64,000 nt of DNA from Haliotis rubra. Lineage: Eukaryota. The stretch's first letter is position 1, and every line of letters begins with the position of its first letter. The notes beneath the pieces were generated by a model. That model saw only the letters and a program-made list of their open reading frames with translations. It had not been told where the DNA came from and made no database searches. The stretch spans positions 62,001-126,000 of the forward strand of contig NW_025765111.1 of assembly GCF_003918875.1 (NCBI RefSeq), in the 5' to 3' direction. Positions 1-48,662 of the stretch are shown in pieces. Position numbers and translations under genes: made by a program.

Positions 1-473
1 CTAACCTACTCGCACTGTAATAAAATGGTATTTGCTTGTGCGGTTTGTCAAAATGTACATGGGGTAGACCTTGGGAAAATATCATCACAGTTTCGCCAGT
101 CTGCCAGGAATATTTGAACGAGAAAGACCACTGCCCATTAACAAAAACAAAGTGTACGATAACACATATATAACTGACGTCTAAAATGACCATTAAGCCT
201 TGAGGGTAACTCCCACTAGACCCTATTTAACCGCCTTCAAGGGAGATCAACGGCTGACAAAAGGTCCCGGCGGACTATTTCTCACCCGGACGATTTACAC
301 TTAACACCGCCATGAAAACACAATGAGGCTGTGCGTCGTTAAAGGCGAAGCCCCGTGTGTTGTTTAATGGCCATGTGGAGAGAATATTTCCCACCTTAAT
401 CATTCAGAACGGATGATAGCGGGCTGCAGTCTTCCATTCGTCCATTTAATGTGTTTAGTGTTGAAACGAAGTC

Positions 474-1067
474 ATGAGCGACGAAGACGACCCGGGTACA
501 GTGACAGTGTTTTCTGGACGAGGACATGAAATCCCGGAGTTATGGTTGAATAAATTCGAGACTTGCGCCAGTCTAAAGACGTGGTGTGTTAGTGACTCAG
601 TCCTTCAGTTTCGACAACGTTTGGCAGGGAGAGCTGCAGTATGGTATCTGTCTCTTGGCACGTCACAGACTGAAACCTTTGAAACATTGAAACAAGCGTT
701 TCGATGCCACTTCTTTAGAGCTGAGATAGATCCGTATCGTTTACGGTTAGATCTTGAAGCCAGGCAACAGGAACCGGACGAATCTGTGGAAAGCTATCTC
801 CATCACAAGATGGTATTTTTGTATCAGTCCAATAAGCTGGATCCGGAATCCTCAGAGGCTATAGACCTAATATATAATGGATTCCACCCCGGACTTCAAG
901 AACGCTTGTGTCGAGATAATATCAGCACTTTACAGGACCTACAAATATGTGCAAGGAAAAAGTATGCGGAACTTTTCAAACCTTGTGGCAGAGTAGTAAG
1001 AAGAAGAAACCATCGGACAAATTCATTTGAAGGAGGTAAGCTTTCGTCATTTAGACCTAACACTTAG
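474..1067 (+). CDS. Ty3/gypsy-type Gag capsid (CA) ORF, 197 aa; exon 1 of the Gag-FYVE model ends at 1035
   Basis: Motifs FSGRGHEIPELWLNKFE, LAGRAAVWY, TFETLKQAFRCHF and the MHR-like QQEPDESVESYLH match retrotransposon Gag CA. No CCHC knuckle, protease or RT follows. Strong donor GAG|GTAAGC at 1035/1036. Confidence 0.85.
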   Translation: MSDEDDPGTVTVFSGRGHEIPELWLNKFETCASLKTWCVSDSVLQFRQRLAGRAAVWYLSLGTSQTETFETLKQAFRCHFFRAEIDPYRLRLDLEARQQEPDESVESYLHHKMVFLYQSNKLDPESSEAIDLIYNGFHPGLQERLCRDNISTLQDLQICARKKYAELFKPCGRVVRRRNHRTNSFEGGKLSSFRPNT

Positions 1068-4000
1068 GTAAGAATTCATGTTTACCCTTAGCCTAACCAT
1101 ATGTTTAATAGGTCATTGATAAATTTTCAAATCAGTTTTAAACGAGTTTACAAACATTCCTTAGCTTGTTAGTTAGGTAAAGGTATGCAGTCAGAGAAAA
1201 ATGTTTCCAAGACGTCTGTGGCGCTAAAAGTTCACTGTGCAGAGTTGCGTATCTTTGTCATGCCAGGATGGTCTTTTCATTGGCTCAGATCCGGGATATG
1301 TCCTCGTATGGTCTTCATGTTATTAACACTGTATTAGTGAACATATTTATCAGGGATATGGTAAACGTGTACTTGCGTCCCTCCGTCCTGCATGTCCGCC
1401 GGCAGTCTACTAAAATACTGCTGAAAGTGGCTTAGAACACCCCTTACCCCTTAGAGTGGGTATGTGGGGTTTAGGGGAATAGTGTTCCAGGAATGTCACA
1501 ACATGTAAAGTTAAAGTGGGCGAAAACTCGAAGTGGCGTATGTTTGCGACGTTTACCACGTATAATCCGTGGGTACATATAGAGCGAGCTGGGATTCGAA
1601 GCCAGAGTCCTAGGTTTCCTGTGTGGCGCGACATTGCACAGCGAATTCCTTCGTCTTAGACGATTGAGCCACCCGTGTTCAGTTATCCATTAGACGTATC
1701 CATTGTAACGTCATATCGACGCCGTCAATTACCTTCATGGACCAGCACCCTGATGAGGCACGTTTATTTACCCATAACCACTGAAAACTACATAAAATAA
1801 CTTTTGAAGTTACGTCGTTTGAATGAAATTTTATTTCTGTCACCATGTTTGAGCGACATATTCCTGTGTGTACAGACAACGTCGTGACTGGCGTGACGGG
1901 CGGGAACATACACACTGCCAACACCGCCGGTAGTGTCCGGGGCGGCATGGGAAACACCAACGTCATCTACATGTACGGTATGTGCAAATTGTAGTTGGTG
2001 ATCCGGCGTAGGTAGGAACCCGTACTCCGAATGCTTCTCATACGGGCAAGTTGAGGATTGGGTGGTCAAAATGTATGCATTGCATTCATTGTATTGATGA
2101 AACTGTAAGGATCATTTTATATGGTAGCAAGTTTAGGTTTGCTTCGTGCAGACGCGATTAATAAAGACGTTCGTTACAAGGATTGAACGCCGCTGACTTA
2201 TAGTATTGATTATTGTGAGGTTATTAATTTTGTTTTCCAATGATTATATCCATACTGTTCTTTGTTGCTTAACTACAACATACGTTGTACAAAACAACCA
2301 ACATGTAAGCCTGCGTAAACAATGGAAGTTACGATCATCACAGCGCTAAGATACAGGCCCCGTTCCTCAAAGCGATCGTAGCGCTACGACAGTCGTAAGT
2401 CTATGTTAAAGTATGGGAGTTACGATTATCTTAGCGCTACGATCGCTTTGTGGAACGGGGCCCAGGGCTTCAATTTTTTTTTAAAAACAGTAACTTGTCC
2501 TGACTATTTTTCCACTTGCCCTGATTTTATGAAATAATCATGATGATGTAATTATGAAAGAATAAATCAACATGGTATTTGATGTTAATGTTTACTGGAC
2601 TATTTATTGAAAAGTGATAAATAGCAAAGAACGATAACTCTACTTTACTATCATTGTGAAATTTAATAGCTACATTTTGAGCAGATATGAAATTCAATCC
2701 AAGTTTATTTGCAGGTTGAAACCATAAATGGAAATTATCTAGTAGCCCACGGACAAGTAAGATACCATTATTTGATTGCCCGAAATGAAAACTGACTTGT
2801 CCCGGGCACCGGGCGATGGGATTTTATAACCCCTGAGATATCTTGTGCAACGGCTCTCCGATTCCTTTTTCCAGAATTGGTTAATCATTTGTTCTATTTC
2901 TTTAGTCTACCAAGTGATGTCTGAAGATGTGGCAACACTGCTCTGCTCTTGTATTGGAAGTATTGGTGAGTATATATTCTGTGGATTAGTTGAACATGCT
3001 TTTGGTGGTTCTCACATAATATATGCTACATGACGATTAGCAAGTTCCTTGTAATTGTGTTCGACGTTGCCAATAGAACCTTGACGTCATATGACCCCAG
3101 TGTCTCAGATGATAAGATGCCGTTATCATCATGCCGTGTTACGATGTTATGTTTTATGTGAAGTTCCAATTCAAGAGGGGCGGTGGGGTAGCCTAAATAG
3201 TGGTTAAAGCTTTCGCTCGTCACGCCGAAGGCCCGGGTTCGATTCCCCACATGGGTACAACTTGTGAAGCCCATTTCAGGTGTCCCCCGCCGTGATATTG
3301 CTGGAATATTGCTAAAAACGGCGTAAAACAATACTCACTCAGTCAGTCAGTCAGTCCAATTCAAGAGGCAATGACAGGATATTACTAAATTAATTTACTT
3401 GAGACAGAAAATTCTTTATTCCTCTTACCTTGTAGATGATAATCTAAATAATACTCGACCTATGATCATATATCATGCATATGTGTAACTACAGGTTTAA
3501 TTCTCCTGTCGAAGTTTTGATGATTTCGTCAAAGAACAGCAGCACTTGGACTGATGTCAAACAGGAAATATTTACTTACATGGTACAATGGATGCACCCG
3601 TGACCACTAGTGTACATATATGTGCAGCCCTATTCCTCGGATTCATTATATACACATTTATCTCGACTTGCACAGCAATGTCGGTTACCCTTTTGTCAAA
3701 ACCGGTCCCGTGCTGTAGGTTTATTTTTCTATGTTAAACTGGACCACGCGCGTCCCAAGTAAGAACGTACCATCAAGAGTTACCTCCCTTGTTTGCTTTG
3801 CTTGTAAACAAACGACGATTCCAGATTAAACGGATATTGACAATGAAGCATTTCGTTTGAAGCTTTCAAATCGAAGCAGTTCACTTCTAAATGAAAAGGG
3901 CGAGAATGAACTTTTCGAAGATTTTGATCAAGCCACTTTGTATGTTATTCCAGGAACGGATGAAGAAACGGATGAACCAGGCAATAGAAACCCTACATCT

Positions 4001-7000
4001 ACAATCGACTCCGAGGGTGAGTAGATAAATATCTCAAAATGTTTTAATTAATGGTTGTATGTAATACACCTTCATTTCTGTTCCTCAAAATGTGCAACAC
4101 TGAACGTTTGAGCTGCAGGAATAAAGCTCTACATTGAAACAAATCTTACGACTTTGGCATAGATCACAACTACAAAACTATTTATTTACTTATAAAGATT
4201 TAGAAATGATCGTTGACAATATCATGAATTCAGTAACATTGTTCATCTACAAGTTGTTGACACTAACCCCGCCTACCCTTTTATCGGAACTCACTAGTTG
4301 GCTGCAGTGTGCGAAATAGCCACTGGCCCGCTAGCCTGTGGTTAGGAAAAATCCAGTCGGGTCAGTAAATCTCCACAGTCACTGGCCAGACTGGCTAGTG
4401 AATTTTCATGGGGTCATTTTGCAAATATGTCACTCTCTCCGATTTGTTAAATTATAATACAATTTTAAATCATGCAAGAGTATGGCCTGATAAAAATGTT
4501 CATCATATTAGCAGCTTAATGATGAAACCCGTGTCATGCCGTCAATATCTTATTCTCATCTATTTGTGTAATCCTTTGCTTAGTTTCTGCATTCAACTTT
4601 TGGGCTAGTGAATTTTTTTGTGGGCTAGTAACTTCCAGGCATAGCTAGCCCGACAGGCGAACAAAATTTGGAAACTATTTCGCACAGTGGTTGGCTGTTG
4701 GCGCGCCTAATGCATCTGGGTTTATGGAAACATATCATAAGTTGTTTGGTTAGCTAATCAAATGCCATGGAATCACCTGGAATTTCAATAAAACTGTATG
4801 GATGCTTTTTGTTTACGATTTAGTACTCTTAAACTGCCAAGGTAGGTTAGATTTTCCATAAATATAGTTAAAGCATCCATGTTTTATGTGATCAGGCATA
4901 ATATTTAGCGCAAATAAACGCACGCATTAAGGACTCTGAATAGTATTATGTTAATTATGTTTCAGGTAAGGAGCGGCTTGTGGACGCCCTGTTAGGTAAG
5001 TAAATCATGATTTTAGAATTCTAAAATAACAAATGCAGTATTGATGCCAACTGCGTCCACTCTTTACAGGATTTAATTCCCCTTGTCAATGTCGCACGAC
5101 TGATAACGACAAACCCTATATCCTGCCGCCTGGGCCTCTACAATTGGTAGCAGAGGAAGTGCACCCCCATGCCCATCCTCCTCTCCCCCTCTTCTTCAAA
5201 ATGCTGGATCCGCCCCTGCATAACAACTAAAGTTTAACGTTTCCTCTTTGAACTGTTGGAGAGAAAATGAAGTTTTGCTACTTTAGTTTCTAATAAGGAC
5301 AGCCGCGAGATTGAGAAATGGGAACTATATGCTTCTAGATAGAATCCAAAACAGCAGAAAATAGGATTCACTACATGCACTTTAGACTAAGGCTTAGTCT
5401 CTGAATATATATTATTTTGGCAGTAGGGAAATTAATGTGGTTCAGGGACTGTGAGACAGACTACATGCACTTGTACAATTTGAGCTACATTCTCATTGAT
5501 GCTATCTCACTGAGCAGGACTGAAAGGCAAATTCAGCTGCTGGCAACGAACGGATGTAGCAGAAGCGTAACATGGTGGGAGACGCTGTGCACTGACCCTG
5601 GATTTGAAGTGAATATCACAATAACACGTGTTATTGACACCAATCACACCAGCTGGTTTGGTCTATTATTATTGGAAAATTTAACACTATATTTTCAGTT
5701 TGCTTTCAGAAAGACGTGTAAGTGTCCTCTTTAAACCAACTGAAATAATGTCTATACGTTGTCGATGTTTCAGAATCTCTCAGTGATGGGTCCTCTAACA
5801 TCGTGATCCGTAAGGGTGGTACCAATGAACAGGGTGATCGGCCTCACGGTGGTGACTTAAAAGGTTCGTATGTTGAATACCACCCGTAAAGATTCGGGTT
5901 AGAATTGATCTTCAGTAACCCATACTTGTCGTGAGAGGCGACTAAGGGGATCGGGTGGTCAGGCTCGCTGACTTGGTTGACACATGTCATCGGTTCCCAA
6001 TTGCGTAGATCGATGCTCATGCTGTTGATCACTACATTGTCTGGTCCAGATTCGATTATTTACAAACTGCCACCAAATAGCTGCAGATTGCAGCGTTAAG
6101 CAACAAACAAATAAATAGCTGAAATATTGCTGAGCGCAGCGTAAAACTAAACTCACTCACTCAATGTTCAATACCAAAAAACAAAAGGTAACTTGGTAAG
6201 TTTAGACAAGTAATTTGTATGCTGAAATTATATTGATAGAAACACAACGGGCAATACATTGCAGTTATAACTCGAATATTTGGATTAATAGATTATTAAA
6301 GATGCCAGATTGCATTTTGTAAATAAGTCCTTCCGTTAATGACTGCCATCATTACATTGACAAACTGTCTCATTTTTACTACTTTAAAAGGTATTATCTC
6401 AGGTTAAAATGTCTGTACTTGGACTGACGTGGAAAATTTCATAATAGAAATCGTCCTGGATGTACATATTCAGTATGAGCTTTATTGCAATATTTATTCA
6501 ATATTGCGTCTTCCATCTTACAAAATTAAATATTTGATTCATGTTATTCTTTTACCATCCACTGTTCCCAGTAGACAACAGTACATACTGCTGCCATACT
6601 GTCAACAACATTCCAAGTCTAAAAATAATGAAATATATTCTTTGAGAATTCTAAATATGCCTAACCCGTGAAGATCCGGGTTAGAATTGGTCTTCAGCAA
6701 CCCATGCTTGTCGCAAGAGGCGACTAAAGGGTTCGGATGGTTGGGCTCACTGACCTGGTTGACACATATCGTCGTATCCGAAATCGATGCTCATGCTGTT
6801 GATCACTGGATTGTCTGGTCCAGACTCGATTTTTTATAGACTGACGCCATAAAGCTGGAATTAGGCTGAGCGTGGCGTAAAACTAAACTCACTCACTAAA
6901 TATACCTAATATGGGTTATAAATTCGACTAATTGGTCTTCTGACTATTGTCGCTGCACACTGCAAAGCGACACCTGTCGATCGATGGATGAAAAAACATA

Positions 7001-10000
7001 TATCATAAGTGGACCAAATAGGCCTAGAGACAAACTGACACGTGTTTCTCTTTGTTTCCCTTTAAGTTTGGATGTACACTTTAGCGTCATGACTACTTAA
7101 ATGAGTGAGTGATTGTGGTTTTACGCCGCTTTTAGCAATATTCCAGCAAAACCAGAAGTGGACTTCACATATTGTTCCCATGTGGGGAATCGAACAGGGT
7201 TTTCGGCGTTGCTAACCAACGCTTTAACCACTAGCCTACCCACCGCCGTACTTGAATCAAATAAGGCTCCTTATTTCAGACGCTTCCATCAATGATTCAT
7301 TCAATGCTGATGCTGATCATGTCGACGAAGACCTACCATTCCGCTTTGAAGATGAAAGTTCGTATGTCATGTTTTTATATATACAGTGGCCCAATATTTT
7401 CACGTAAATTGTCCTTCAATTCGGTGATGGGTGATAAATTAGTTTGCAATCGGAATATCCCATATTTTTATATATTTTCAACCGGAACTGATTTCAAGAA
7501 TTATTTAGAAAATTAGTAAACTAAGGTAAACATAAACCATTAACGCCAATAATCTCAATTGATCTTGAAAGAAAATGTCCCCAGTTTGCCTATTACAGTC
7601 CGTTTGAGTCAGAAACGGACCGATGAATTGCAAATTTTATCATTGTACAAAATTGCCACATAAATATAAATAGTACACATGTTTATCATTTACTAATACC
7701 CAACAGCTTTTTTTATATTTGAAAATTTTCCGGACTCTACCAAAAAAGTTGTTTAAGAAACTATCATCATTGAAAACTCAAACGGACTGTACGTCCTGTG
7801 GAATCCATTTGAGACTGATGTCGTTTTTCTAATGGAGTTGAAAGAATACACTCTTTTGAACTCAATAACATATAATAGTCGTAATCCTTACCAAGTCCGC
7901 CCCATCCAGGCATCCCGAAAGTGTTCTATTTGTCATTATTGAGTAACTTTAATGCTTGCCATAACATACAAAAAGGTGGGTGAGTGAGTGAGTTTAGTTT
8001 TATGCCGCACTCAGCAATATTCCAGCTATATGGCGGCGGTCTGTAAATAATCGAGTCTGGACTAAACAACCCAGTGATCAACAGCATGGGCATCGATCTG
8101 CGCAATTGGGAACCGATGACATGTGTCATCGAGCCTGACCACCAGGTCCCTTTAGTCGCCTCTTACGACAAGCATGGGTTACTGAAGATCAATTCTAACC
8201 CGGACCTTCACGGGTCACATACAAAAAGGCTATGTGACGCCGGTAATCCGTCTCAGTGCTTATTAAATGCAATTGATTATCACTGATTATCATTGAAGAT
8301 CTCCGTTATTGATTGATCGAACAGATTCATATCCCAAGTTCACGGCCGAGCTTAACCGGTGTGTTAAAGACATCCACAGTTTGCTGTCCAGCACCAAGGA
8401 AGATGAAGAGAAAAATGCACCGATTGATGACACTTCTGATACAGATAAAAGTACGTACAGCTGACTCGCCGAACAATATCATCTTAAATGTTCAGCAAAA
8501 CCGCATTTGCAATGGTATGTAGTACCCTAGGTCTCTGTTGATCACAGGGTTTGTGGCGGCGAATTTCGATGACTTCAAATGGTTTCTTTTCGTGAAGTTC
8601 TAGTTCTCGAAATTCGCCGCCACAAGCCCTTGATCAACAGAGACCAAGGTTACTACATACGGCCTACGAAGAATTTACCAAGCTGTAAACTATCACAGCA
8701 CCCAACCAGCATGTTTTTGCTACTTAATTCCTCCTGTTTTTTAGCTTCGTCGCCTTCATCACTTGGTTGTAGTCCCTTTTATCTTGAAACAGTGTAAGGA
8801 TCTACACCGAAACGTTCCACTAGGCTATAAGCAAAAAGGTGTAATCTTCAAAGTTGTATGCTTCCTAATTTACTAACTGCGTTCATCTACCAGGGTCAGA
8901 ATCGGATACGAGAAGGAGAACGGATCCAGTATCGGTGCCGGACGACCAGGCTCCTCGGTGCATGCAGTGTTACGTCAAGTTTACTGTTTTTAAACGAAAA
9001 GTAAGTACACATCTTGACATATAAATTTATAACGCTATTAAGACAAATTTAACAGCAATCTCTTCACCATCAGGCCAGTATCGTTAGCCTGTCCACACGC
9101 CATATATTGTACGAGTGGGTTTGTTAGTTCGTGAGTCGATAAATTAATAGGTTTATTTTAACGCTTCTGTGGACAGTATTCATGTAAATATGTTGCTCGT
9201 GGTCTTGACGTTAGAGGGTGGTGTGGTGCTGACAAACCTATACATATAATTCGATTCTTTTCCAAACTACGATCATAGGTTTCAGTCAATAACTGGATTT
9301 TGTCAGTGTGCATTAAACTCCATTCTGATATGTTTCGTTTTCTCTCCACGATTTGGAAAGTGTGTTCAACCTGATTCATCCTTAGCATCCACCCCAACTG
9401 GAATCACAATGACTGTGATCAAATATCAGCATATACTTACCACTGTAAAAGTGAATGAGTGAGTGAGGTTTACGCTGCTTTTAGCAATATCCCAGCAATA
9501 TCCCTGCGGGGGGACACCAGAAATGGGCTTCACACATTGTGCCCATGTGGGGAATCGAACCCGGGACGTTAGCGTGACGAGCGAACGCTTTAACCACTAG
9601 GCTATCTCACCGCCCTCGCACAGTAAAAACACACAATGTGAAATAATCTTCCGAGAACTGACTGAAAACATGAATTGTTATATGGTAGTGATGCCCGAAG
9701 GCATGCATCATTGCAGTAGTGTTCCTACTTCCACATAGGCTTCCAATTAGTTGTTACTGTAAACAACAGTGCGTTCCCAAAGTGTTTCAGCAGATATAGT
9801 ACAACCAATTTGCAGTTGTGTAATCACCATCTTGAACCTGTGCTGCTGGGTTACACTCATTATCACATCTTCCCTCTGACTGATTTGTAATTAGATCGAT
9901 CAGTTCATGGTTCTGTTTAACCCGAAAACATTTACTATTAATTTTTTATTTTGTATCAATCTTTTTTACCTCCATGCAAGTTCCGATAAACAGCCGTTTA

Positions 10001-10247
10001 ATGATATTTCTGTCTCAATAAATTCAGGTATGCATATTTCGTCCTTATCCATCCAATGATGACTTATTAAAATATAAAATATTTCTTGGAATGTTTGACA
10101 TGTAATTTATCATTTTTCCCAATGCAGCACCACTGTCGAAAATGCGGTTTCGTTGTGTGCAAGACGTGCTTAACAACAGAAAATTCGGAGAAGGTATGTA
10201 AGGCTTGCTACACGGAACCGTCAACTGAATACTTGAGAATTGTCTGA
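474..10247 (+). CDS. Predicted spliced gene: retrotransposon Gag capsid domain + acidic linker + FYVE zinc finger (~406 aa, 10 exons: 474-1035, 1876-1977, 2906-2965, 3954-4016, 4966-4995, 5774-5809, 7280-7361, 8392-8450, 8894-9000, 10128-10247)
   Basis: All introns GT-AG, exon phases compatible (1,1,1,1,1,1,2,1,0), total 1221 nt with no internal stop. The Gag and FYVE ends are recognisable by motif; the small middle exons are called from splice signals and frame only. Confidence 0.6.
1876..1977 (+). CDS. Gag-FYVE candidate exon 2 (DNVVTGVTGGNIHTANTAGSVRGGMGNTNVIYMY); could instead be an alternative first exon from ATG 1845
   Basis: tacag| acceptor, G|gtatgt donor, phase 1-1, GC-richer than its flanks. 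Confidence 0.45.
2356..2462. mobile_element. MITE, probably PIF/Harbinger type
   Basis: 31-bp terminal inverted repeat ggccccgttc(c/a)caaagcgatcgtagcgcta with 1 mismatch; CAG next to both ends. Confidence 0.7.
2906..2965 (+). CDS. Gag-FYVE candidate exon 3 (VYQVMSEDVATLLCSCIGSI)
   Basis: ttctatttctttag| acceptor, G|gtgagt donor, phase 1-1. Confidence 0.5.
3177..3355 (+). mobile_element. tRNA-derived SINE, family A (~170 bp)
   Basis: A box (tagtggttaaagc) and B box (ggttcgattcc), (ACTC/AGTC)n tail, target duplication ccaattcaagagg. Confidence 0.9.
3954..4016 (+). CDS. Gag-FYVE candidate exon 4 (GTDEETDEPGNRNPTSTIDSE)
   Basis: ttattccag| acceptor, G|gtgagt donor, phase 1-1, acidic. Confidence 0.55.
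4305..4689. mobile_element. hAT-type MITE
   Basis: TIR ca(g/c)tgtgcgaaatag and a perfect 8-bp target duplication gttggctg (4297-4304 and 4690-4697). Confidence 0.85.
4966..4995 (+). CDS. Gag-FYVE candidate exon 5 (GKERLVDALL)
   Basis: gtttcag| acceptor, G|gtaagt donor, 30 nt, phase 1-1. Confidence 0.5.
   Translation, partial: VRSGLWTPC
5774..5809 (+). CDS. Gag-FYVE candidate exon 6 (ESLSDGSSNIVI)
   Basis: gtttcag| acceptor, C|gtaagg donor, 36 nt, phase 1-1. Confidence 0.45.
5882..6162 (+). mobile_element. SINE-like repeat, family B (~250 bp)
   Basis: Matches many other copies in the window (acccgtgaagatccgggttagaattg...gctggaatattgctgag...actcactc). Confidence 0.85.
6664..6897 (+). mobile_element. 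SINE-like repeat, family B
   Basis: Full copy with near-perfect target duplication ctaaatat(g/a)cctaa. Confidence 0.88.
7102..7248 (-). mobile_element. SINE family A, internally deleted
   Basis: Reverse-complement similarity to the 3177-3355 copy. Confidence 0.8.
7280..7361 (+). CDS. Gag-FYVE candidate exon 7 (HASINDSFNADADHVDEDLPFRFEDES)
   Basis: ttatttcag| acceptor, TC|gtatgt donor, phase 1-2, acidic. Confidence 0.55.
7596..7789. mobile_element. Tc1/mariner-type MITE
   Basis: TA|CAGTCCGTTTGAGT...ACTCAAACGGACTG|TA: perfect TIR with TA duplication. Confidence 0.85.
7980..8216 (-). mobile_element. SINE-like repeat, family B
   Basis: Full reverse copy; target duplication acatacaaaaagg. Confidence 0.9.
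8392..8450 (+). CDS. Gag-FYVE candidate exon 8 (STKEDEEKNAPIDDTSDTDK); alternative in-frame acceptor at 8380
   Basis: gtccag| acceptor, A|gtacgt donor, phase 2-1, acidic. Confidence 0.55.
8519..8657. mobile_element. Foldback/MITE hairpin
   Basis: ~50-bp inverted arms (gtagtaccctaggtctctgttgatca...ggcggcgaatttcga) around a ~38-bp loop. Confidence 0.75.
8894..9000 (+). CDS. FYVE domain, N-terminal half (RSESDTRRRTDPVSVPDDQAPRCMQCYVKFTVFKRK)
   Basis: xVPD...CxxC...F...RK motif; ctaccag| acceptor; AAA|gtaagt donor. Confidence 0.85.
9451..9616 (-). mobile_element. SINE family A
   Basis: Full reverse copy. Confidence 0.88.
10128..10247 (+). CDS. FYVE domain, C-terminal half and stop (HHCRKCGFVVCKTCLTTENSEKVCKACYTEPSTEYLRIV*)
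   Basis: Completes the RKHHCR signature and three more CxxC pairs; tttttcccaatgcag| acceptor; TGA at 10245-10247. Confidence 0.88.
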   Translation, partial: HHCRKCGFVVCKTCLTTENSEKVCKACYTEPSTEYLRIV

Positions 10248-10544
10248 ATACAGACCGAAGTCAACAGACATATCGGAAGGACAAGATATTGTGTCGCGTA
10301 TCCAGATCTTTCCAAGAACTATCCACTATCAGATTAGGTCAAAGTGATCATGATACAAGATATCCTGACAATGCCCGACAAAAAGGCACAGAAGTTTTGT
10401 GACTGACACTCTTTGTAAATCCTGCTGACCTCGACCTTTAATCTCCGGCACACACAAAGCGGCAAAGCAAATATTGCAGTAATGTATAATGCTAAAGGTA
10501 TACCATTCTTGTAATACATCCTTAATTGTTCTAGATTTGATGTA

Positions 10545-11615
10545 TCATCACAGGCTCACTCATGACATGTTTACCACTCTGATGGCAGAAGTATCTGCGA
10601 TTGTAAACAGTCGCCCAATCGTGTCAACTGATCCAGAATCTCCAACAATCGTCAGTCCATCAGTTCTTCTAACTCACAAGACTGACTCAGTATCAGGTAT
10701 TGGCAACCTAACACCAGTTCATGACTTGAAACATTTATACAAGTCTCAGTGGCAACAAGTGAAATCTTTAGCTGATGCGTTTTGGCACAAATGGAAAGTG
10801 GAGTATTTGCATACGTTACAACCCAGAAGAAAGTGGAGAAGTCCTGAGAGAAATGTCCAAGATGGAGACGTTATTCTTCTTAGTGACAAGAACCTACATC
10901 GAAATCAGTGGAGACTGGGTGTTGTAGTTACTCCTTAATGTTTTAATCTTATATTTTATACATTTTATGCACATATTGTCTAGTGTGCACTGTCTCATTG
11001 GCCATCTGGCCCGGTGTCTGTATTTTTCTATGTCTTTTTACCGTTGCCATTTTTTGACATGTACATTCACGTGACACAAAAATAAACTATTTTGTCTGTC
11101 TGTCTGTCAGTTACTGCTCTACCTAGCGATGATGGGAAAGTCTGTCAAGTTATGCGAACCATGAGAGATGGAAAACCAATAACCTATACTCCGCCAATCA
11201 CCGAGTTAACTCTGCTGTTGCCAGCAGAGCAGCAGTGAATCTTTGATATTGTTGACATCTGATCAGAATTAGTGAAAGACTAATTTAACATGTTCCGGAA
11301 CATTTGAGTTAACGTTAAAGATTCATATTCTCATGAGTTTATCTTAATTTGGTATATATATATATGTGTAATGATATTCAGTATAAATATCATCGGGGGG
11401 TGTGTTCTGTTTCCCATTCTCATCTCTGTTCTTTTTCACATTTTACTTACGCTTCTTTTCTTTTCCGTGTGTTAGTTGTTTTGAAACTCTCGGGGAGTGA
11501 GATAAAAAGTGATGGGCCAGACCGCATGGTCTTATTGGGTTTCGGGTTGGGAGCCAATCTCCCAAATGCGTGTACAAGAGGCACAACTTATGGCTTGCAT
11601 AGAGTAAGTAGTACA
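10545..11615 (+). mobile_element. BEL/Pao LTR-retrotransposon 3' remnant (integrase end/DUF5641-like region, polypurine tract, probable 3' LTR from ~11401)
   Basis: ORF 10489-10938 contains AEVSAIVNSRP...FWHKWKVEYLHTLQPRRKW...GDVILL...WRLGVV; it continues at 11110-11238 (LPSDDGKV...PITELTLL). G-tract at 11395-11400 is followed by TG. LTR end is approximate. Confidence 0.85.
10934..11108 (+). mobile_element. Short non-LTR retroelement 3' fragment inserted in the Pao remnant
   Basis: AATAAA then a (TGTC)n tail; target duplication agttact on both sides; splits the Pao reading frame. Confidence 0.7.
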
Positions 11616-12247
11616 TTCGAATGATCACTGATGTTTCTTGAGAATGTATGAATGTATGAAATACAATTTACCGTTCCAAATATGCTCAATATCTGTTTAT
11701 TATTGTGTGACCGTCACCTTCGCTTTCATTGATTTAGGTATGCGTTTCAGTTTCACAGTAATTATATGTAAACAACTTTATCAGGTTGGTGTATACAGCA
11801 GCAAATGCATTAGTAACAAGGAAATGTAATATTTAATGCAACTGGGTAATTTCGTAATTGGTATGCACTCCACATGTTCGAAATACTGGTTTGAAGCGTC
11901 CGTAAAAGAGTTTTGATTTATACATTGTCCATTACATATGGTTCATTCTCCACTAAACTTGCACATTAACATCATCTGACGTCTTTGTGAAGTTATAAAA
12001 ATATTTACACGATCTTTTAACATTCTGTTACATTGGAACTACAACAAAGGTGGACATAAATAAAAACATATCACAATCACTTCGTAGGAAGGGTACAAGA
12101 AACGTCTGTTAATCCCACACAATGCTGTTATGTGATTTTTCGTTTGTCTTCGACAGTGTGTATTTCAGTCAGTACACCTTTTGTTGATCAATTTGTCTAT
12201 TTACAGCTGTCTGAAATGTTCTAATTTGCCACAGTATTCTAATAAAT

Positions 12248-12335
12248 ATGTGTGAAGCCCATTTCTGGTGTCCCCCGCCGTGATGTTGCTGGAATATTGC
12301 TAAAAGCGGCGTAAAACTAAACTCAGTCAGTCAGT
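12248..12335 (+). mobile_element. SINE family A, 5'-truncated
   Basis: 3' half and (AGTC)n tail; flanking ctaataaatat duplicated. Confidence 0.85.
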
Positions 12336-12571
12336 CTAATAAATATTTATGTGTAGCCCTGAACGTCATATTTTGTGTTGTATTTTGTTTCTTTATACCA
12401 AATTATGTGTCTTGAAATATGTCACCAGATACGTTACGCACTTTCAAGCGTTCATCAAACTCCTCTTAACAGCAACAGGACGTTTTATGTTTACCATAAT
12501 TCATTTGCCTCAAGGTTTGTTGTTGAAATTTACTGAACTGAACAACAACTACCATTCGTTCATAAAACTTC

Positions 12572-12920
12572 GACCGCCTCCGTGGTGTAGTGGTTAGAGC
12601 GTCCGGAGAGCGGAGAGTCGCGGGTTCGATCCCCGACCGCGATATACCAAAAGAGGTTAAAATATGGTACTTGTTGGTCCCTGCCTGGCGCTCGGCATTA
12701 ATGGGTACAACAAGGACTGATCGGCTCGGAGTCAGTATAATGTGTCTGAGTGGGGTATTCATGCTTCTCTGCGGCATGGTATCTCAGTGGGCTAGCACTA
12801 TAAAACCAGCTTAAGTCTGGGCTAGTACAAGCAGCCGCACATACACATGCACACGCATGCACGTCGTCATATGAGCGAAATATTCTCAAGCACGACGTAA
12901 AACCCAATTTCACCTCATAC
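12572..12920 (+). mobile_element. tRNA-derived SINE, family C (V-domain-like centre)
   Basis: A box gtggtgtagtggtt, B box ggttcgatccc, centre ggctcggagtcagtataatgtgtctgagtgggg...gctagcactataaaa. A diverged relative lies at ~61975-62270. Confidence 0.8.
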
Positions 12921-13578
12921 AACTTCACAATGTTGTCTCGATGGAGAGAAACAGCTGGCCATTGCAGAATAGCAGCGTGTGGCAGCCATTTTCCCGCTGC
13001 GACGTGACGTGACGTCCCGGCAGTATAGTAATGATCTCGAAAGATGTCGGTCTAGTCGCGTTCGAATCCTGATTATATTGTGTTTCTTGGTTTATCTACC
13101 TCATACCTCCTCCTGTGGCTTCAATAGTGTACCGCCGTTGGCTTTGCGTCTTACATTCAGATATCCCTAGGTGATATATCTGAAACATTTACGGCGTCGA
13201 ACCCACTCACTCACCCACTCTGTACAGCCGTGTTACCCCAGTTGTGAAACATCAAGTGCGTGCACTTACCCCGGTCAAATGTACACTAACAAAAACAAGT
13301 AGGACTTGATTGTTTCGGAACAATTATTTATTTACTTGAGCAACAAAAATACATTAAACATGTTAGTCATTACTCTAGGTAAACAGAACGCAAACAGGAT
13401 ACAATACAGGTCAAAATCAACAATTAAACCTTGAAACCGAATGGAAATAAACACAAAGTACGGATTTCTAGAGTGATACGTTCATAAAATATCGGTAATG
13501 ACGGAGAAAATATCAGAACGATGACATATAATCTTCCAAGGAGATCCCATAGCTTGTGTTGTATATAGAATGACACTA

Positions 13579-13741
13579 GTGAGTGAGTGAGTTGTGTTTT
13601 ACGCCGCTTTTAGCAATATTCCAGCAATATCGGCGGGGGACACCAGAAATGGGTTTCACACATTGTACCCATGTGTGGAATCGAACCCGGTCCCTTTGGC
13701 GTAACGAGCCAACGCTTTAACCACTAGGCTACCCCACCGCT
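13579..13741 (-). mobile_element. SINE family A
   Basis: Full reverse copy; target duplication agaatgacactag. Confidence 0.9.
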
Positions 13742-13869
13742 CCAGAATGACACTAGGAATATGGAAAGATGTTCGGGAAATATAGGATGGGGGTTCAGTG
13801 TTTCTATTTCAATCTCAAATCATTTACCCTTTTTCACAGACATGTTATTTCAGTATGAAGACCATAGAT

Positions 13870-14042
13870 TTGTTTGTTTGTTGTTTAACGCCGCACTCAG
13901 CAATTTTACAGCTATATGGCGGCGGTTTGCCAATAATCGAGTCTGAACAAGAACATCCAGAGATCAACATCATGAGCATCGTTCTCCGCGATTGGGGTAC
14001 GATGACAAGTGTCAACCAGGTCAGTGAGCATGACCGCCCGAT
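13870..14042 (-). mobile_element. SINE-like family B, partial
   Basis: Reverse similarity to the family B 3' part. Confidence 0.75.
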
Positions 14043-14887
14043 GGGGACTGAAAGAATAAGTTCTTGGGACTGTATTAATTTGTGTGCTGATCAAGACGAC
14101 ATACAAAAATAAATACCAATGTGGTAATTTTGTGAGTGTATCAGTGAAACGTTATCTACACGGAATTGACAGAACAAATGCGGATGGATACACCAGATTC
14201 ATTCGCGGGAATTAAGTGGAAAATCACGTGGAAATTATGAAATCGCCAGAATTCTGGATTTGTGTAAGGGGATATCGGAACAGGCATATTCGTCTCGCAT
14301 CTTTCGTATCGCTTTATTTTTCACCAATAATACGAAAAAGACTTTGTTCTGCACTGGAAATTCCATCAGTTGCCAATGATACTTCTGTAAACTTGGTGGG
14401 CACAGGTAACGACTTGTATTGCCCAATTAAACCATTTCCTTTATAAACATGCAATATATTTTCAAACAGAACAAAGGTGCAAAGATATTGAAGTGTAGCA
14501 GATTAGAAATCTATATTTGTATAATCACAATTATTTGTAAAATATGTACAATATACAGAGTAAAAATATAGCACAATTTCCTATCTTGGAATAATAATGT
14601 ATATGGATATGATTAGTCAGACGAAATAGCCAGTAACCGATGTTATATGCACAGTCATAGTGAGACACATTTAATTTATTGTTATCATCTTGTAATAATT
14701 GTTTATCCATTCCTTTACTTATATGGGATACTGAATTTATATACAACGGTCACTTTCTAAGCTTACAGCAATATTCCAGAATTAATATAACCATTCGGTA
14801 TTCAGCCTTCGGTTGTTTTCACTAGATCATGTGACACATCAAACTCATTCTCCCGCATGCGCAGAGACCAACATACCTACGCACACA

Positions 14888-14984
14888 TCAGATAGTGCAC
14901 GGAATCAGATAGTGGTAGCAGTGGTCACGAGATGAATTCCGATCTCTGATTACTTTTCCGATTTCGTCAAGCTCGGCGACGAAT
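14888..14984 (-). CDS. LOX-like last exon ([32 protein letters not shown])
   Basis: F...L..I...I..RN....Y.YL.P motif; stops six residues before the canonical PNSxxI terminus. Confidence 0.88.
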
Positions 14985-17900
14985 CTGTAAACAGACAAAT
15001 ATGCTAGACTAAGTATAATGGTTACAAGATGATTTGTTTACAAGACTACACAGAGTTGTCTCCCTTTCATCATCTCCCCAAACAACAACTGCCCTTCCTG
15101 GGACTGTATTCATTATAAACACCTTGTCAGATATGCCGGTCAACGTGGACCATAACATACCACAAGCATGTGAGCTCATGTCTGGTATGTACTAGTTTAT
15201 GCTTTTGTATATGTTTGCGCTAAACGTAATTTTAACCAACTGAATTCGAAGGCACATCATCATGTGGTGTCAAATGTTAAATTTAGCACCATGCAACCGT
15301 TTAAACCTATTCTTGAATTTAATTAGTAAATATTGTTGTAACAGCAAGCTCATTGTGCTTATGATTTTGTTCACATGGCTACCGACTATGACTGAGAAAG
15401 AAGTACTTTACTACAAATCGAAGGTTTTACTCATAAGTGAAATTCCTTTGAAACCTCTGATTGGCATATGAGGATCGGGCGTTTGCCACATTCATGGAAG
15501 AACATATATATGAACGTATAAATAATATCTCCATCAAGTTCGGAAAGCCTTCAGGTCCTTGTTCAAACCGGTGTCTCATGAATGTGGCCCGATAGGTTGC
15601 AAAGTTTTATGTTTAGATAGTATTGAGGGCTTGCCCAACTTTCATTTTTTATAACACCTGCAGTGTTATCGTTTGACGTTTAATGATTTTAATCACTTCC
15701 AAATGTTGTTTTCTTATCATTTTGAAGTCATAAGGAGAACTGAGAGCAGTCTGCCATTAATTGTAGTCAATATGATTCATATAGGGATTACCATTTTTTA
15801 AATTGTTCTGATAACGGGATTGTATGTATTTTTGGCAAGAATTTGAAAAAAGATTTTTTTAGCAAACAACGTGTGTAAGCCCGTTTTTTTAAAAACAAAA
15901 CATGGTAGCTACGCCCCTGGTTCCTGATCCACTTTTGATCAGTCTCAGTATGCGTCGTGCAAATAAACCAGCCATGAGTGATGGGTACTTGGTGCTATCG
16001 GCACACAGTTGATGCCCTTGAGACACCACGAACGAGGTTATCGTATGTACCCAATAACCCCTTGACCATAACTAAAATTAAAAGACCGCCGAAGTAGTCA
16101 AATACCTTGTGTGTATGTCTGCAGCCCGTGGGTCATACAAGTACATGGAGTCCCTATCTCCCAGAATCCCCTTGTTGACTGTGTCCGACAGGACTTGCGC
16201 CAGTGCCACGCCCTGATCCCAGTTGGTGTCGGTCTGCAGGGCGTTCAAGACGTCCGACTCCTCATGGGGCGTCTAGCAAGTGACCAATATAATAATTATG
16301 TATGCATACGTTTTGAAACATCAACATCAACCAATATTCCAGCAGTAGTAACAGGCAGTGATGAAATGTCTATAAATGGATCACTGAAAATGTGTGCTGA
16401 CACCAGAGGTTCGAAAATAGGGTCGACAGGTCCTGCTCTATGTGAAGCATCCACCATACACACTTTTGTTAATAACAAAAGTGAGAGTGAGAGTGAAACT
16501 CAGAATAGTGGAATAGTATCTCGAATCATACTGACAAGCAACGAGTAATATTTAGCAAATTATAGACCGTATGTCTTCTATGAAATTTCTGCAATAGCTT
16601 GGTGGTGGTATCGGTTGTGTAACCTTAAAAAAGCTTAGTTGAGCAAAATACGAAGTCAATAAAAAGTACATGCTCTAACATGAGAATAATCTTGTGCTGG
16701 TTGCATCGGTTTTACGTTCATGAATAGGCTTCAGGCGTTATACACATCTGGGGATTTGAACTCGTGTGGCGCAACAACGCATGCCAACAGAAGATGAATA
16801 AAAGCGACAAAGGGCATAACATGATCGACATAATCCGTTCCATATTTCATAAGAGATCTTTGCCAAAAGCAGAGTCGTGTATCCGGCTTCGGCCTTTACC
16901 ACAAGCATATGTCCATATATAACCACAAGACAACAAGGCGTTCGCGAAAATGTGAGCATATCTCGCCGGAGCAGCAACATTCGTAACAAACACACGCAAA
17001 GGCAAGTCAACTGCCAACCTCAACAAACCTCTTACAAGACATTTTACAAGCCTGAACAGGGAACAACATCGGACATCTCTGCTAATAGTTGACTGCATTG
17101 TACAATTCATATGATAAGCATGAATCACTCTCAAATAGTGATGAAACACTGCCCATTTGACTAAAATCTTAACTCACTCACTACTCACTCATATACTAGA
17201 TGAAGGGGATTTAACCCAAACCAATACAAATACACATTTTAACACACATGGAACACACGACTTTAAGAGCAGTAAAGGGGTTAAAAGGAAAACGAATCAA
17301 ATATTGGGTAAAAGGTTTCAAAACACTAGGATTTAACCTTGTTTTAAGTGATACAGTGACTGGAATAACAACAGGTCTTGGAAGGAATGGATTCAACTTT
17401 CAAAAAGTGATGTCTTGCTCCAGATGGTAAAACAGAATATCAAGAGTTGAAAGAAGTTAATGGATCCTCTAAAAGTATAAAAAAAAATCCAATTACGCTA
17501 TATAACAACCCCGTTCTTTTCGTGTAAAAGTTCTGTTTTCTCACATGCACATTTTTTCATAATTTATCTTAATCCTACAGTTTTCTTCAGCCTCTTTAGT
17601 TAGATGGGATTGGTTATTACTATAAAGACTGAACTCATGTTAAGTACCATTATGATATTAATGAACAGGGAGAAAAATATTACACTTCCGAAGCAATACC
17701 TTATCGGCTGGGGGTGCGCCGCTTAGCTTCAGTGGGTAGTTGGGTGGGAAGCCGTACGAATCATACATAGCCCCGCCAACTGCCGCTTGCTGCGCAGTGC
17801 ACGTGAAGATGATTGACGTGACCAGATCTTGAAGCTGTTCCGGTTTACACACACTACCGTCACCAGGTAGACCCTGCAGTCAACAAACCATGCTGGATTG

Positions 17901-20900: not shown

Positions 20901-21622
20901 ACAAGGAGTTTCACATATGAAGCGCAATAGATGCAGACTGTAAAACCAGTCTTTCTCAATAAGATCGAAGATGTAACACTGAAACTGGGCGACAGAGCGA
21001 CCCATTACATGTGGACATAACACAAGATATGTTATCGATTAATCATCTTATGTACATCGATGTGACTATTTAAGTCAGCTACTTTCATCGTTATGTGGTC
21101 GCCCTACCTACCCCTCTTTTAACGACGTCTTCTGGGAGACAGCTGTTGACATTAAAGCGCCATGACTCAAGTCTGGAAGAGAAATGTAACTACAGTCACG
21201 TTGGGTTCCTTCACATGAAAACAGCTGGTGATCGGGTATATTATGAAATGCGTCCATTTTTCAACCAAATCGCAGTATCCTATGGGAAGTTTCAACATAA
21301 TACATAAACAATACTTTCTTCTCTATTGTAACACGTAGTACTAATAAAATGAATTTAAAAACAAACAAAAACGTTCTCAAAGTCCACCACTCTGTTTAAC
21401 ACCACACTCAGCAATATTCCAGCTATATAACAGCGGTTTGTGAATAATCGAATCTGGACCAGACAATCCAGTGATTGACATCATGAACATCGATCTACGC
21501 AATTGGGATACGATCACATTCATCAACGACGTCAGCGAGTCTGACCACCCGATCCCGTTAGTCGCCTTTTACGACAAGCATTGCGACAAACGCATCACGT
21601 AGGAAAGTGCACAAAAATTTTC

Positions 21623-21667
<45 letters not shown>

Positions 21668-41504: not shown

Positions 41505-41960
41505 CTTCCTTGACGGCGCTCACACCGACGTCAACTCCAGCGCAGCTCGCAAAGTCTCCTGGTGCTGTGATGGAGCGTGGTGGGAGACTACTGCCATCTG
41601 TCGACCGGTGGTATTGTGCTTCTATTCACCTGCTGTTAGAAGCTACCTAAGCGTGGTGAATATATGGATTTTATTTCTTAAAATGTCACACAGGCAGCAA
41701 TGACTATGTATCAAGAGGTAGGTATATGTGAAATAAATTGAATAATACGCTGTCAATAAATTTGCAAGGTTGAATATAAGCATAAATACAAACGCGTAGG
41801 GGTTGAAGCTGATATTTGCATCAGGCGATCTCATCAGGCGATAGCTCCGTTTGACGGACTGTATAACTGTTAATCAATACTAGAATGTTGATGAATACAT
41901 TTCCATATGTATGTACGTGTCCTCAAAGTGGGATGTTAATAGGTTTCTGAATCTATTGCT

Positions 41961-42179
41961 TGGTTCGTTGTTTAATGCTGCACTCAGCAATATTTCAGCT
42001 ATATGGCGGCGGTCTGTAAATAATCGAGTCTGGGCCACACAATCCAGTGATCAACAGCATGAGCATCGATCTACGCAATTGGCATACAATGACAACCACG
42101 TCTGATCACACGTTCCCGTTAGTCGCCTCTTACAAGCATGGGTTGCTGAGATCAATTCTAATCCGGATTTTCGCGGGTC
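41961..42179 (-). mobile_element. SINE-like family B
   Basis: Reverse similarity to family B. Confidence 0.82.
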
Positions 42180-42387: not shown

Positions 42388-43083
42388 TTTTGTTATTCAG
42401 GTATGTCACGTCAAGATGCACACATTTGTTATTCACGTATGTCACGTCAAGATGCACACATTTGTTATTCACGTATGTCACGTCAAGATGCACACATTTG
42501 TTATTCATGTATGTCACGTCAAGATGCACACATTTGTTATTTACGTCAAGATGCACACATTTGTTATTCACGTATGTCACGTCAAGATACACACATTTGT
42601 TATTCACGTATGTCACGTCAAGATACACACATTTGTTATTCACGTATGTCACGTCAAGATACACACATTTGTTATTCACGTATGTCACGTCAAGGAGCAC
42701 ACATTTGTTATTCACGTATGTCACGTCAAGATACACACATTGTTATTCACGTATGTCACGTCAAGATACACACATTGTTATTCACGTATGTCACGTCAAG
42801 ATACACAAGATACACATTTGTTATTTGTTATTCACGTATGTCACGTCAAGATACACACATTTGTTATTCACGTATACCACGTCAAGATACACACATTTGT
42901 TATTCACGTATGTCACGTCAAGGAGCACACATTTGTTATTCACGTATGTCACGTCAAGATGCACACATTTGTTATTCACGTATGTCACGTCCAGACACAC
43001 ACATTGTTATTCACGTATGTCACGTCAAGATACACACATTTGTTATTCACGTATGTCACGTCAAGATACACACATTGTTATTC
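42388..43083. repeat. 36-bp minisatellite (~19 copies)
   Basis: Unit tttgttattcacgtatgtcacgtcaagatacacaca. Confidence 0.95.
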
Positions 43084-48660: not shown

Positions 48661-48662
48661 TC

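Follow-up and report, generated by a model that had tools for sequence, protein, structure and literature searches.

An abalone gene in which a retrotransposon capsid is joined by predicted splicing to a FYVE finger

Introduction

Can a retrotransposon capsid become part of a host gene that also encodes its own endosome-type lipid-binding module? This question is raised by a locus of Haliotis rubra that lies within a stretch of 64,000 nucleotides (assembly GCF_003918875.1, contig NW_025765111.1, positions 62,001 to 126,000 of the forward strand), hereafter the window. A first-pass annotation, made from the sequence alone, had proposed that an intact 197-aa Ty3/gypsy-type Gag capsid ORF was spliced in frame to nine downstream exons, the last 2 forming a FYVE finger, and had interpreted the product as a domesticated host protein, possibly an Arc-like RNA or vesicle carrier or a retroelement restriction factor. 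Domesticated Gag proteins are already known, but we found no paper on an architecture in which the capsid is combined with a FYVE domain.

Results

The capsid exon and the FYVE exons belong to one annotated gene

We first asked whether the proposed exon chain exists. The ORF of 197 residues is present and matches Pfam Retrotrans_gag at 28.7 bits against a cut-off of 24.1, the donor that ends the capsid exon is identical in 4 Haliotis species, and all nine downstream exons named by the first-pass annotation are in the sequence and join in frame. The last 2 exons give a FYVE finger with four CxxC pairs and RKHHCR, with a Pfam FYVE score of 47.2 bits against a cut-off of 27.8. This is not a chance chain, since the 3 RefSeq isoforms of H. 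rubra LOC124261589 (X1-X3; proteins XP_046551876.1, XP_046551884.1 and XP_046551893.1) map exactly onto the window with GT-AG introns. The observation is therefore confirmed, although four exon boundaries had to be corrected against these models and the orthologues: exon 6 runs to 5863 and not to a donor at 5809/5810, exon 7 ends at 7357 and not at 7361, exon 8 starts at 8325 and not at 8392, and exon 9 starts at 8894 in X1, as first proposed, or at 8900 in X2. The longer exons 6 and 8 are conserved as coding sequence in other species. The final set of ten exons is given in Table 1.

The protein is annotated in RefSeq as an uncharacterized protein, with one isoform misnamed as lateral signaling target protein 2 homolog. 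The splice junctions rest on RefSeq models and conservation and not on transcript reads, and the models of related species are not fully independent of one another. A search for junction-spanning protein fragments found nothing.

Table 1. Features of the locus, in window coordinates
Position	Strand	Feature	Observations
1..473	+	5' flank of the gene (probable promoter and 5'UTR); no LTR	356/440 identical (81%) to the H. asinina flank, above the intron average of 71.5%; no long direct repeats flank the Gag exon
474..1035	+	Exon 1: ATG plus a complete Ty3/gypsy capsid (both lobes), residues 1-187, ending at donor GAG|GTAAGC (1035/1036, phase 1)	AlphaFold2 pLDDT >90 for residues 10-170; Foldseek match to dArc2 6taq_A; donor conserved in 4 species
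474..1067	+	Unspliced Gag ORF, 197 aa
1036..1067	+	Start of intron 1; if the intron is retained, the ORF ends 10 codons later, giving a 197-aa Gag-only product	Unspliced ORF is 197/198 aa in all four species
1876..1977	+	Exon 2 (phase 1-1): Gly/Asn/Thr-rich conserved segment	88-92% nt identity to orthologues; 59% aa identity to the paralogue by tblastn over the exon-2 segment; the BLASTP alignment to P0151 runs through it
2906..2965	+	Exon 3 (phase 1-1): short helix, conserved; homology to the paralogue ends just after it	AlphaFold2 helix 227-239 at moderate pLDDT
3954..4016	+	Exon 4 (phase 1-1): start of the acidic linker	Linker is 26% D+E with net charge -19
4966..4995	+	Exon 5 (30 nt, phase 1-1)	27 nt in H. 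asinina, an in-frame length change
5774..5863	+	Exon 6 (90 nt, phase 1-1): cassette exon	Skipped in isoform X3; full length conserved as coding sequence in 4 species
7280..7357	+	Exon 7 (phase 1-1)	Skipped in H. rufescens isoform X2
8325..8450	+	Exon 8 (phase 1-1)	Present in H. rubra, H. rufescens and H. cracherodii; absent from the H. asinina locus
8894..9000	+	Exon 9: basic stretch plus the first half of the FYVE finger (SVPD, first CxxC, FKRK)	Alternative acceptor at 8900 gives isoform X2
10128..10247	+	Exon 10: second half of the FYVE finger (HHCRKCG, two more CxxC pairs) and the stop codon	AlphaFold2 pLDDT >90 for residues 380-435
10489..10938		BEL/Pao piece (retroelement fragment)

The gene is conserved, single-copy and under purifying selection in abalone

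Next, we compared the locus among abalone species. Orthologous Gag-FYVE proteins are annotated in H. asinina, H. rufescens and H. cracherodii, where the gene lies at the same locus, colinear and upstream of a lipoxygenase gene in each species. All splice sites are conserved, exons are more conserved than introns (87% identity against 72% in the comparison with H. asinina, and 81% against 53% with H. rufescens), and every difference in exon length is a multiple of 3. Estimation of dN/dS by the NG86 method showed strong purifying selection on the Gag exon (0.09-0.18, with dS up to 0.93; Fisher p = 7e-23), with values of 0.16-0.29 for exons 2-3, 0.23-0.81 for the whole linker and 0.24-0.51 for the FYVE finger, which is thus looser than the capsid.

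In H. asinina we also found a tandem paralogue that shares Gag plus exons 2-3 but lacks the FYVE and has a quite different tail. It aligns at 43% identity through residue 246 and not beyond, with the same junction, so the Gag donor has been used since before the duplication, and it groups with the orthologues in the Gag tree (SH-aLRT 92).

We then examined whether the Gag exon could be part of a transposon, in particular one of many near-identical LTR-element copies absent from the locus in relatives, a condition that had been set in advance as a refutation. Neither was the case: there is no LTR, no protease, RT, zinc knuckle or other retroelement domain was found in the gene's ORFs, no other copy was found in the window or in the orthologous loci, and the gene is present in the relatives. 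The nearest non-Haliotis Gag among 1.8 billion representative proteins is only 31% identical.

Exon 1 is predicted to fold as a two-lobed capsid and exons 9-10 as a FYVE finger

To place the 2 domains among known structures, we combined profile searches with structure prediction. The family profile searched against the PDB retrieved dArc2 (1e-20), dArc1, Arc, PNMA2, PEG10 and Ty3, and the AlphaFold2 model of the capsid gave the dArc2 capsid as its best Foldseek match (target-normalised TM 0.73, rmsd 3.4). For the FYVE finger, the best solved relative is ZFYVE16/endofin (3t7l, E = 4e-12), with which it shares the VPD..AP.CM.C.VKFT...R(R/K)HHCR.CG core and the eight Zn-binding Cys; all eight Cys and RKHHCR are conserved in 4 species. 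However, in H. rubra the W of the WxxD motif is S (TCG in place of TGG), the arginine of RVC is K in three species and M in H. rufescens, and the hairpin before the last CxxC is about 7 residues shorter than in ZFYVE16, so that PI3P binding could be weak or lost. Between both domains lie a conserved 54-residue segment and an acidic, largely disordered linker of about 140 residues made of alternatively spliced phase-1 cassette exons.

Discussion

Relation to known systems

The interpretation of the first-pass annotation, a domesticated Ty3/gypsy capsid joined by splicing to a FYVE domain in a host gene, is supported by every test that we could run. The protein shares the two-lobed capsid fold, as predicted, with vertebrate Arc and Drosophila dArc1/dArc2, which are also domesticated Ty3/gypsy capsids with Pol lost and under host selection, and mammalian Arc also works through PI3P on endosomes and multivesicular bodies (PMC11363301). 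Nevertheless, this is an independent capture, only 18-22% identical to Arc or dArc and with retroelement Gag and Gag-Pol proteins as its nearest relatives; Arc has no lipid-binding domain of host origin, whereas here a FYVE finger is encoded in the same gene, which has 10 exons and whose capsid formation remains a prediction. The mammalian PEG10/RTL (Mart) and PNMA families are likewise domesticated metaviral Gag genes, some of which form released capsids, and PNMA2 and PEG10 appear among both the sequence and the fold matches, but they keep retroelement-derived partners (NC, protease) or no partner at all, none carries a FYVE domain, and they belong to a different lineage.

A precedent for a co-opted LTR-retrotransposon gag joined to a host gene through GT-AG introns and kept under purifying selection is found in plants, with Crtg10-KELP and Crtg14-PEX14 (Wang and Han 2021, PMC8321522), in a different kingdom, with different partners and without a FYVE or phosphoinositide module; that survey does not mention molluscs or FYVE. 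The FYVE finger itself resembles those of the endofin/SARA type (ZFYVE16, ZFYVE9) and other PI3P-binding FYVE fingers, with the deviations described above, but it is attached to a capsid rather than to SARA/endofin domains. The logic also recalls the MA domain of retroviral Gag, which targets PI(4,5)P2, where a capsid protein carries its own phosphoinositide-directed membrane anchor and multimerisation strengthens binding, although the anchor here is C-terminal, of host origin and of the PI3P (endosomal) type rather than N-terminal, myristoylated and directed at the plasma membrane.

Alternative explanations

The most serious alternative, which we consider less likely, is a non-assembling adaptor, in which the capsid lobes are kept only as a peptide-binding or protein-protein interaction module, as the N-lobe of mammalian Arc binds receptor tails, and the FYVE finger merely places that module on endosomes, with no shell and no cargo transfer. 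The strong purifying selection on the capsid without any nucleic-acid-binding domain, the long flexible linker typical of adaptors, and the paralogue that keeps CA plus exons 2-3 with a different tail, suggesting that CA is a reusable binding module, would fit this view. On the other hand, both lobes and the full helix set of assembling capsids are retained, and the best fold matches are chains taken from assembled dArc capsids. Nothing in our data separates the two ideas, which differ only in oligomeric state, and capsid assembly cannot be inferred from a monomer model.

A restriction factor appears unlikely. A Gag-derived decoy in the manner of Fv1, enJS56A1 or Ty1 p22, stationed on endosomes, could co-assemble with and poison incoming or resident Ty3/gypsy or errantivirus-like capsids, and the protein is indeed Gag-derived, lineage-restricted and devoid of NC, PR and RT, in genomes that carry many retroelement fragments such as the BEL/Pao piece in the window. 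However, the capsid evolves very conservatively, unlike arms-race genes, and with the closest retroelement Gag among 1.8 billion representative proteins only 31% identical no obvious target for co-assembly was found. Very unlikely, in our view, is a gene-model artefact, in which the Gag ORF is a separate 197-aa gene or a dead transposon remnant and automatic annotation chained it to a FYVE protein starting downstream and carried the error between species. The lack of transcript evidence in our analysis, the closure of the unspliced ORF 10 codons after the donor in all species, which makes a Gag-only product possible, and the use of cross-species protein alignments by Gnomon leave room for it. 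Against it, the donor and every acceptor are conserved in four species, the paralogue keeps Gag, exon 2 and exon 3 homologous over 247 residues, the intronic ATG at 1845 is not conserved, a dead remnant would not show a dN/dS of 0.1, and RefSeq is not known to issue multiple isoforms (here a NAGNAG acceptor and exon skipping) without transcript support.

A proposed oligomeric protein of endosomes

We conclude that the locus is a genuine abalone host gene, which arose when the gag gene of a Ty3/gypsy retrotransposon was captured and lost its zinc knuckle, protease, RT, integrase and LTRs. What our analysis shows is the intact two-lobed CA domain of exon 1, its connection to host-type exons through a conserved donor inside the old gag ORF, the order of the segments of the product, and the single-copy, syntenic and selected state of the gene together with its paralogue, whereas PI3P binding, endosome targeting, self-assembly and any carrier or restriction role are inferred. 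We assign a probability of about 0.55 to the following mechanism as a whole; we are highly confident that the fused gene is real and selected, hold it somewhat more likely than not that the protein targets PI3P or endosomes, and regard the formation of closed capsid-like shells as only tentative. As there is no nucleic-acid-binding knuckle, an RNA cargo has no obvious handle.

In this view, the FYVE finger sits where the nucleocapsid zinc knuckle used to be, replacing RNA binding with lipid binding, and CA-CA self-association makes the protein multivalent, which would turn a weak single FYVE-PI3P contact into avid binding to PI3P-rich membranes of early endosomes and multivesicular bodies. The protein would therefore act in abalone as an oligomeric, possibly shell-forming, coat or scaffold on endosomes, with linker isoforms that would tune the spacing.

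Recovery of the split gene

The 197-aa ORF at the start of the gene matched Pfam Retrotrans_gag (PF03732) at 28.7 bits against a curated cut-off of 24.1, with a weaker match to Ty3_capsid, and the same profile scored 26.8-30 bits in the full proteins of 4 species and 36.4 in the paralogue. We then re-read every junction listed in the first-pass annotation, which had proposed a domesticated retrotransposon capsid joined by splicing to a FYVE domain. The donor GAG|GTAAGC is present, the downstream pieces all exist, are bounded by AG and GT and join in frame, and the last two exons give a finger with four CxxC pairs and RKHHCR. What the annotation described is therefore present in the sequence, although its chain differs from the RefSeq models at the exon 6 donor, the exon 7 donor and the exon 8 acceptor. 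The annotated alternatives are also in frame, but the longer exons 6 and 8 are conserved as coding sequence in other species. An alternative start at the ATG at 1845 was also examined and is not conserved in H. asinina.

Next, we searched for relatives of the ORF. A homology search with the 197-aa ORF alone returned nothing because of its length window, the relatives being 408-729 aa long, and the ORF itself has no entry in the protein collection. An exhaustive phmmer search against 1.84 billion representative proteins gave two strong hits, the only two protein clusters below 1e-30, followed by a sharp drop. The first (P0001, 408 aa) is 87% identical over residues 1-189 and the second (P0002, 703 aa) is 44% identical over residues 6-188, whereas the next hits are ordinary retroelement Gag or Gag-Pol proteins at 31% identity or less. 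P0001 carries Retrotrans_gag plus FYVE and is RefSeq XP_067686347.1 of Haliotis asinina. Searching with P0001 recovered the same architecture in H. rubra (LOC124261589) and H. rufescens (LOC124114008), and inspection of the protein clusters added H. cracherodii and further isoforms. The three H. rubra isoforms, X1 (445 aa), X2 (443 aa) and X3 (415 aa), map exactly onto the window with GT-AG introns, so the window is H. rubra or an essentially identical genome; X2 uses an acceptor 6 nt downstream of that of X1 and X3 skips exon 6. A search with residues 140-270, designed to capture short transcript-derived fragments spanning the exon 1/2 junction, found nothing, and the splicing is thus inferred from RefSeq model isoforms and conservation without independent transcript evidence.

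Features of the 64-kb window and of the paralogous H. asinina locus
Feature	Position	Strand	Remarks
Gag ORF	474-1067		197 aa
Exon 1	474-1035		donor at 1035/1036
Exon 2	1876-1977		Gly/Asn/Thr-rich peptide
Exon 3	2906-2965
Exon 4	3954-4016
Exon 5	4966-4995
Exon 6	5774-5863		skipped in X3
Exon 7	7280-7357		skipped in H. rufescens isoform X2
Exon 8	8325-8450		no counterpart in the H. asinina locus
Exon 9	8894-9000		acceptor at 8900 in X2
Exon 10	10128-10247
DUF5641 ORF	10489-10938, within 10541-13239	+	67 bits
Lipoxygenase gene	about 13200-41504	-	PLAT-domain exon ORF at 40980-41504
Repeat of roughly 160 nt	3176-3354, 7101-7247, 9450-9618, 13578-13743, 22918-23078, 43518-43668	both orientations	Rfam tRNA hit at 23007-23067
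Repeat of about 200-250 nt	5882-6114, 6664-6897, 7971-8216, 13870-14042, 21393-21581, 23142-23375, 26150-26392, 33451-33643, 37539-37786, 41956-42179, 48657-48921, 63500-63682		inverted pairs inside introns 6 and 7
59-nt minisatellite and separate 36-nt satellite	44431-47157 and 42389-43083		about 46 copies and 19 copies; spurious ORFs at 44124-45848 and 46189-47277
Run of 154 N	52200-52353		assembly gap or masked stretch
Immunoglobulin I-set/Ig_3 ORF	57321-57764	+	E = 5e-10; probably an exon of another gene
Tandem paralogue	10001-22865 of locus L002 (H. asinina CM074535.1)		XP_067686336/37, 729/703 aa

A host gene rather than a transposon copy

To distinguish a host gene from a transposon copy, we compared the locus between species. 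The window is colinear with the H. asinina locus through exons, introns and the downstream region, and in H. rubra, H. asinina, H. rufescens and H. cracherodii the gene is followed by a lipoxygenase gene, which in the last three lies on the opposite strand, as it does in the window. Every donor and acceptor is conserved in the four species. Exons are 87.4% identical against 71.5% for introns between H. rubra and H. asinina, and 80.9% against 52.7% between H. rubra and H. rufescens, and all exon length differences are multiples of three. The linker nevertheless gains and loses whole phase-1 exons, as exon 8 is present in H. rubra, H. rufescens and H. cracherodii but not at the H. asinina locus.

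Nei-Gojobori (NG86) estimates over these four species showed purifying selection on the Gag exon, with dN/dS of 0.09-0.18 at dS of 0.08-0.93 (Fisher p = 7e-23), compared with 0.16-0.29 for exons 2-3, 0.23-0.81 for the whole linker and 0.24-0.51 for the FYVE part. We found one Gag copy in the 64-kb window and one in each orthologous locus, with no long direct repeats flanking it and no zf-CCHC, RVP, RVT or rve domain in the protein or in the ORFs of 1-13.4 kb, so that the criteria of an intact or active LTR retrotransposon are not fulfilled within the sequences examined. ORFs inside the introns and in the 3' flank have no Pfam domain apart from DUF5641, the C-terminal part of a BEL/Pao-type integrase, which lies 240 nt after the FYVE stop codon inside a roughly 2.7-kb stretch that does not align to H. 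asinina and looks like a lineage-specific transposon fragment unrelated to the Gag exon. Among the outcomes that the first-pass annotation had named beforehand as contradicting it were that the ORF be one of many near-identical LTR-element copies and that it be absent from the orthologous locus in relatives, and neither was found in the loci and protein collection compared. Its reading of a domesticated capsid spliced to a FYVE domain is supported.

Three copies of the roughly 160-nt repeat family lie in introns of the gene, and the position of an Rfam tRNA hit inside one copy suggests a tRNA-derived SINE; related copies occur in the other abalone loci. The second dispersed repeat family, of about 200-250 nt, is also abundant in the H. 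asinina and H. rufescens loci. The 59-nt minisatellite lies on a C/A-rich strand (GC skew down to -0.78) and creates the spurious long ORFs.

A tandem paralogue without FYVE

In H. asinina a second gene lies about 16 kb upstream on the same strand, in a region whose counterpart falls upstream of the start of the window. It has 17 exons, and its product aligns with the Gag-FYVE protein at 43% identity through capsid, exon 2 and exon 3, up to residue 246 and not beyond, being followed by about 480 residues with no recognisable domain. Its first intron sits at the same place. No FYVE exon lies near this paralogue, and no paralogue exons were found within 10 kb upstream of the H. rufescens and H. 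cracherodii genes.

In a quick maximum-likelihood tree of 112 Gag domains the five Haliotis sequences form one group (SH-aLRT 92), with the paralogue as the outgroup to the four orthologues and Gag-protease proteins as their neighbours. Outside Haliotis, the ten best hits scanned (P0003-P0010) and the tree neighbours scanned carry CCHC knuckles, protease, RT or integrase, or Gag alone, and identity to dArc and Arc is 17-22%, so that the gene does not belong to the Arc/dArc family by orthology and is an independent capture. We read these data as one capture, then acquisition of exons 2-3, then tandem duplication with different tails. The paralogue is a second domesticated Gag gene. The shared junction is the best evidence available to us that the donor in the old gag ORF is really used.

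Predicted structure of the capsid, linker and FYVE modules

AlphaFold2 with a 112-sequence alignment predicted the capsid with pLDDT above 90 for residues 10-170, modelled as 10 helices of 4 or more residues in two lobes (9 in the full-length model). Foldseek ranked chains from assembled dArc1 and dArc2 capsids first (6taq_A, target-normalised TM 0.73, rmsd 3.4), followed by PNMA2, Arc and Ty3 (6r24). The family profile hits dArc2 in the PDB at 1e-20 and the single sequence hits it at 7e-5. The full-length model shows two confident modules, the capsid and the FYVE finger at 380-435 (pLDDT above 90), between which pLDDT is mostly below 50 with moderate helices at 227-238, 261-277 and 331-350. 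The linker is 26% Asp+Glu with net charge -19. The exon 2 peptide (core GGMGNTNV) is modelled as disordered (pLDDT about 40), and yet it is an unexplained motif conserved between the orthologues and the 43%-identical paralogue.

The FYVE finger (PF01363) scores 47.2 bits against a cut-off of 27.8 and is most like ZFYVE16/endofin (E = 4e-12), with the four CxxC pairs that provide the eight Zn-binding Cys and the basic motif RKHHCR conserved in all four species. Other motifs of the PI3P-binding subclass deviate wholly or in part. The N-terminal WxxD reads WVPD in H. asinina, H. rufescens and H. cracherodii but SVPD in H. rubra and the window (TCG codon), the C-terminal RVC is replaced by KVC in three species and by MVC in H. 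rufescens, and the distal hairpin is about 7 residues shorter than in ZFYVE16. The RefSeq name of isoform X3, lateral signaling target protein 2 homolog, was rejected, since the only similarity to the roughly 900-residue Lst2 (ZFYVE28) protein is to FYVE residues 811-852 of 9f43 (E = 1.5e-6) and the rest of the protein is capsid plus linker. The name comes from the FYVE match alone.

Discussion

The proteins are already in RefSeq, as 'uncharacterized protein' apart from the isoform named after Lst2, but full-text literature searches found no paper on a Gag-FYVE protein. A survey of co-opted gag genes reports plant fusions with KELP and PEX14 but nothing in molluscs and nothing with FYVE. A 2010 FYVE/PX survey lists Retrotrans_gag among the associated domains, which as we read the flattened table falls in the PX column and not the FYVE column. 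A Ty3-like transcript reported in H. laevigata matches a pol region and contains stop codons, so it is unrelated. The gene therefore adds to the domesticated Gag genes one in which the capsid is joined to a FYVE finger, restricted to Haliotis as far as the searched collections show.

While the domains, the conserved gene structure, the selection and the paralogue come directly from the sequence comparisons, expression and function are entirely inferred, including assembly, lipid binding, cargo and release in vesicles. In our interpretation the FYVE finger occupies the place of the lost nucleocapsid knuckle. Single FYVE domains bind PI3P weakly and usually need dimerisation, and a self-associating capsid domain would supply that multivalency. 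We therefore propose an oligomeric, possibly shell-forming, protein on PI3P-rich endosomes or multivesicular bodies, with the spacing varied by the alternatively spliced phase-1 cassette exons. Mammalian Arc capsids depend on PI3P and the MVB route (PMC11363301), which makes this reading plausible, although the motif deviations mean that PI3P binding could be weak.

Other explanations were weighed against this one. The protein could be an adaptor that never forms shells. A restriction factor is disfavoured by the low capsid dN/dS and by the lack of any close retroelement Gag among the proteins searched, and an annotation artefact is disfavoured by conservation and by the paralogue. A bolder possibility, which we consider unlikely, is that abalone independently evolved an Arc-like system in which the capsid carries its own PI3P anchor, so that the protein would assemble into shells on multivesicular-body membranes, bud into intraluminal vesicles and be released in extracellular vesicles that carry cargo between cells. 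If true, this would be a natural experiment showing that endosomal PI3P targeting is the key step for turning a retrotransposon capsid into an intercellular carrier.

Domesticated Gag genes such as Arc, PEG10 and PNMA are studied as natural intercellular carriers and as delivery vehicles, with the way in which they reach the right membrane still an open point, and a 2024 study found that Arc capsid assembly and secretion depend on PI3P at endosomes (PMC11363301). In the abalone gene, evolution has wired a dedicated module of the FYVE lipid-binding type, whose binding here is inferred, directly onto an intact capsid, in what would be the position once held by the RNA-binding zinc knuckle, and the combination has been kept under selection across the genus. 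Besides correcting a misleading database name, the gene provides a clean test case for a capsid plus a putative endosomal anchor, a rare documented capsid-host domain fusion in an animal outside vertebrates and insects, and, in its FYVE-less paralogue, a built-in comparison.
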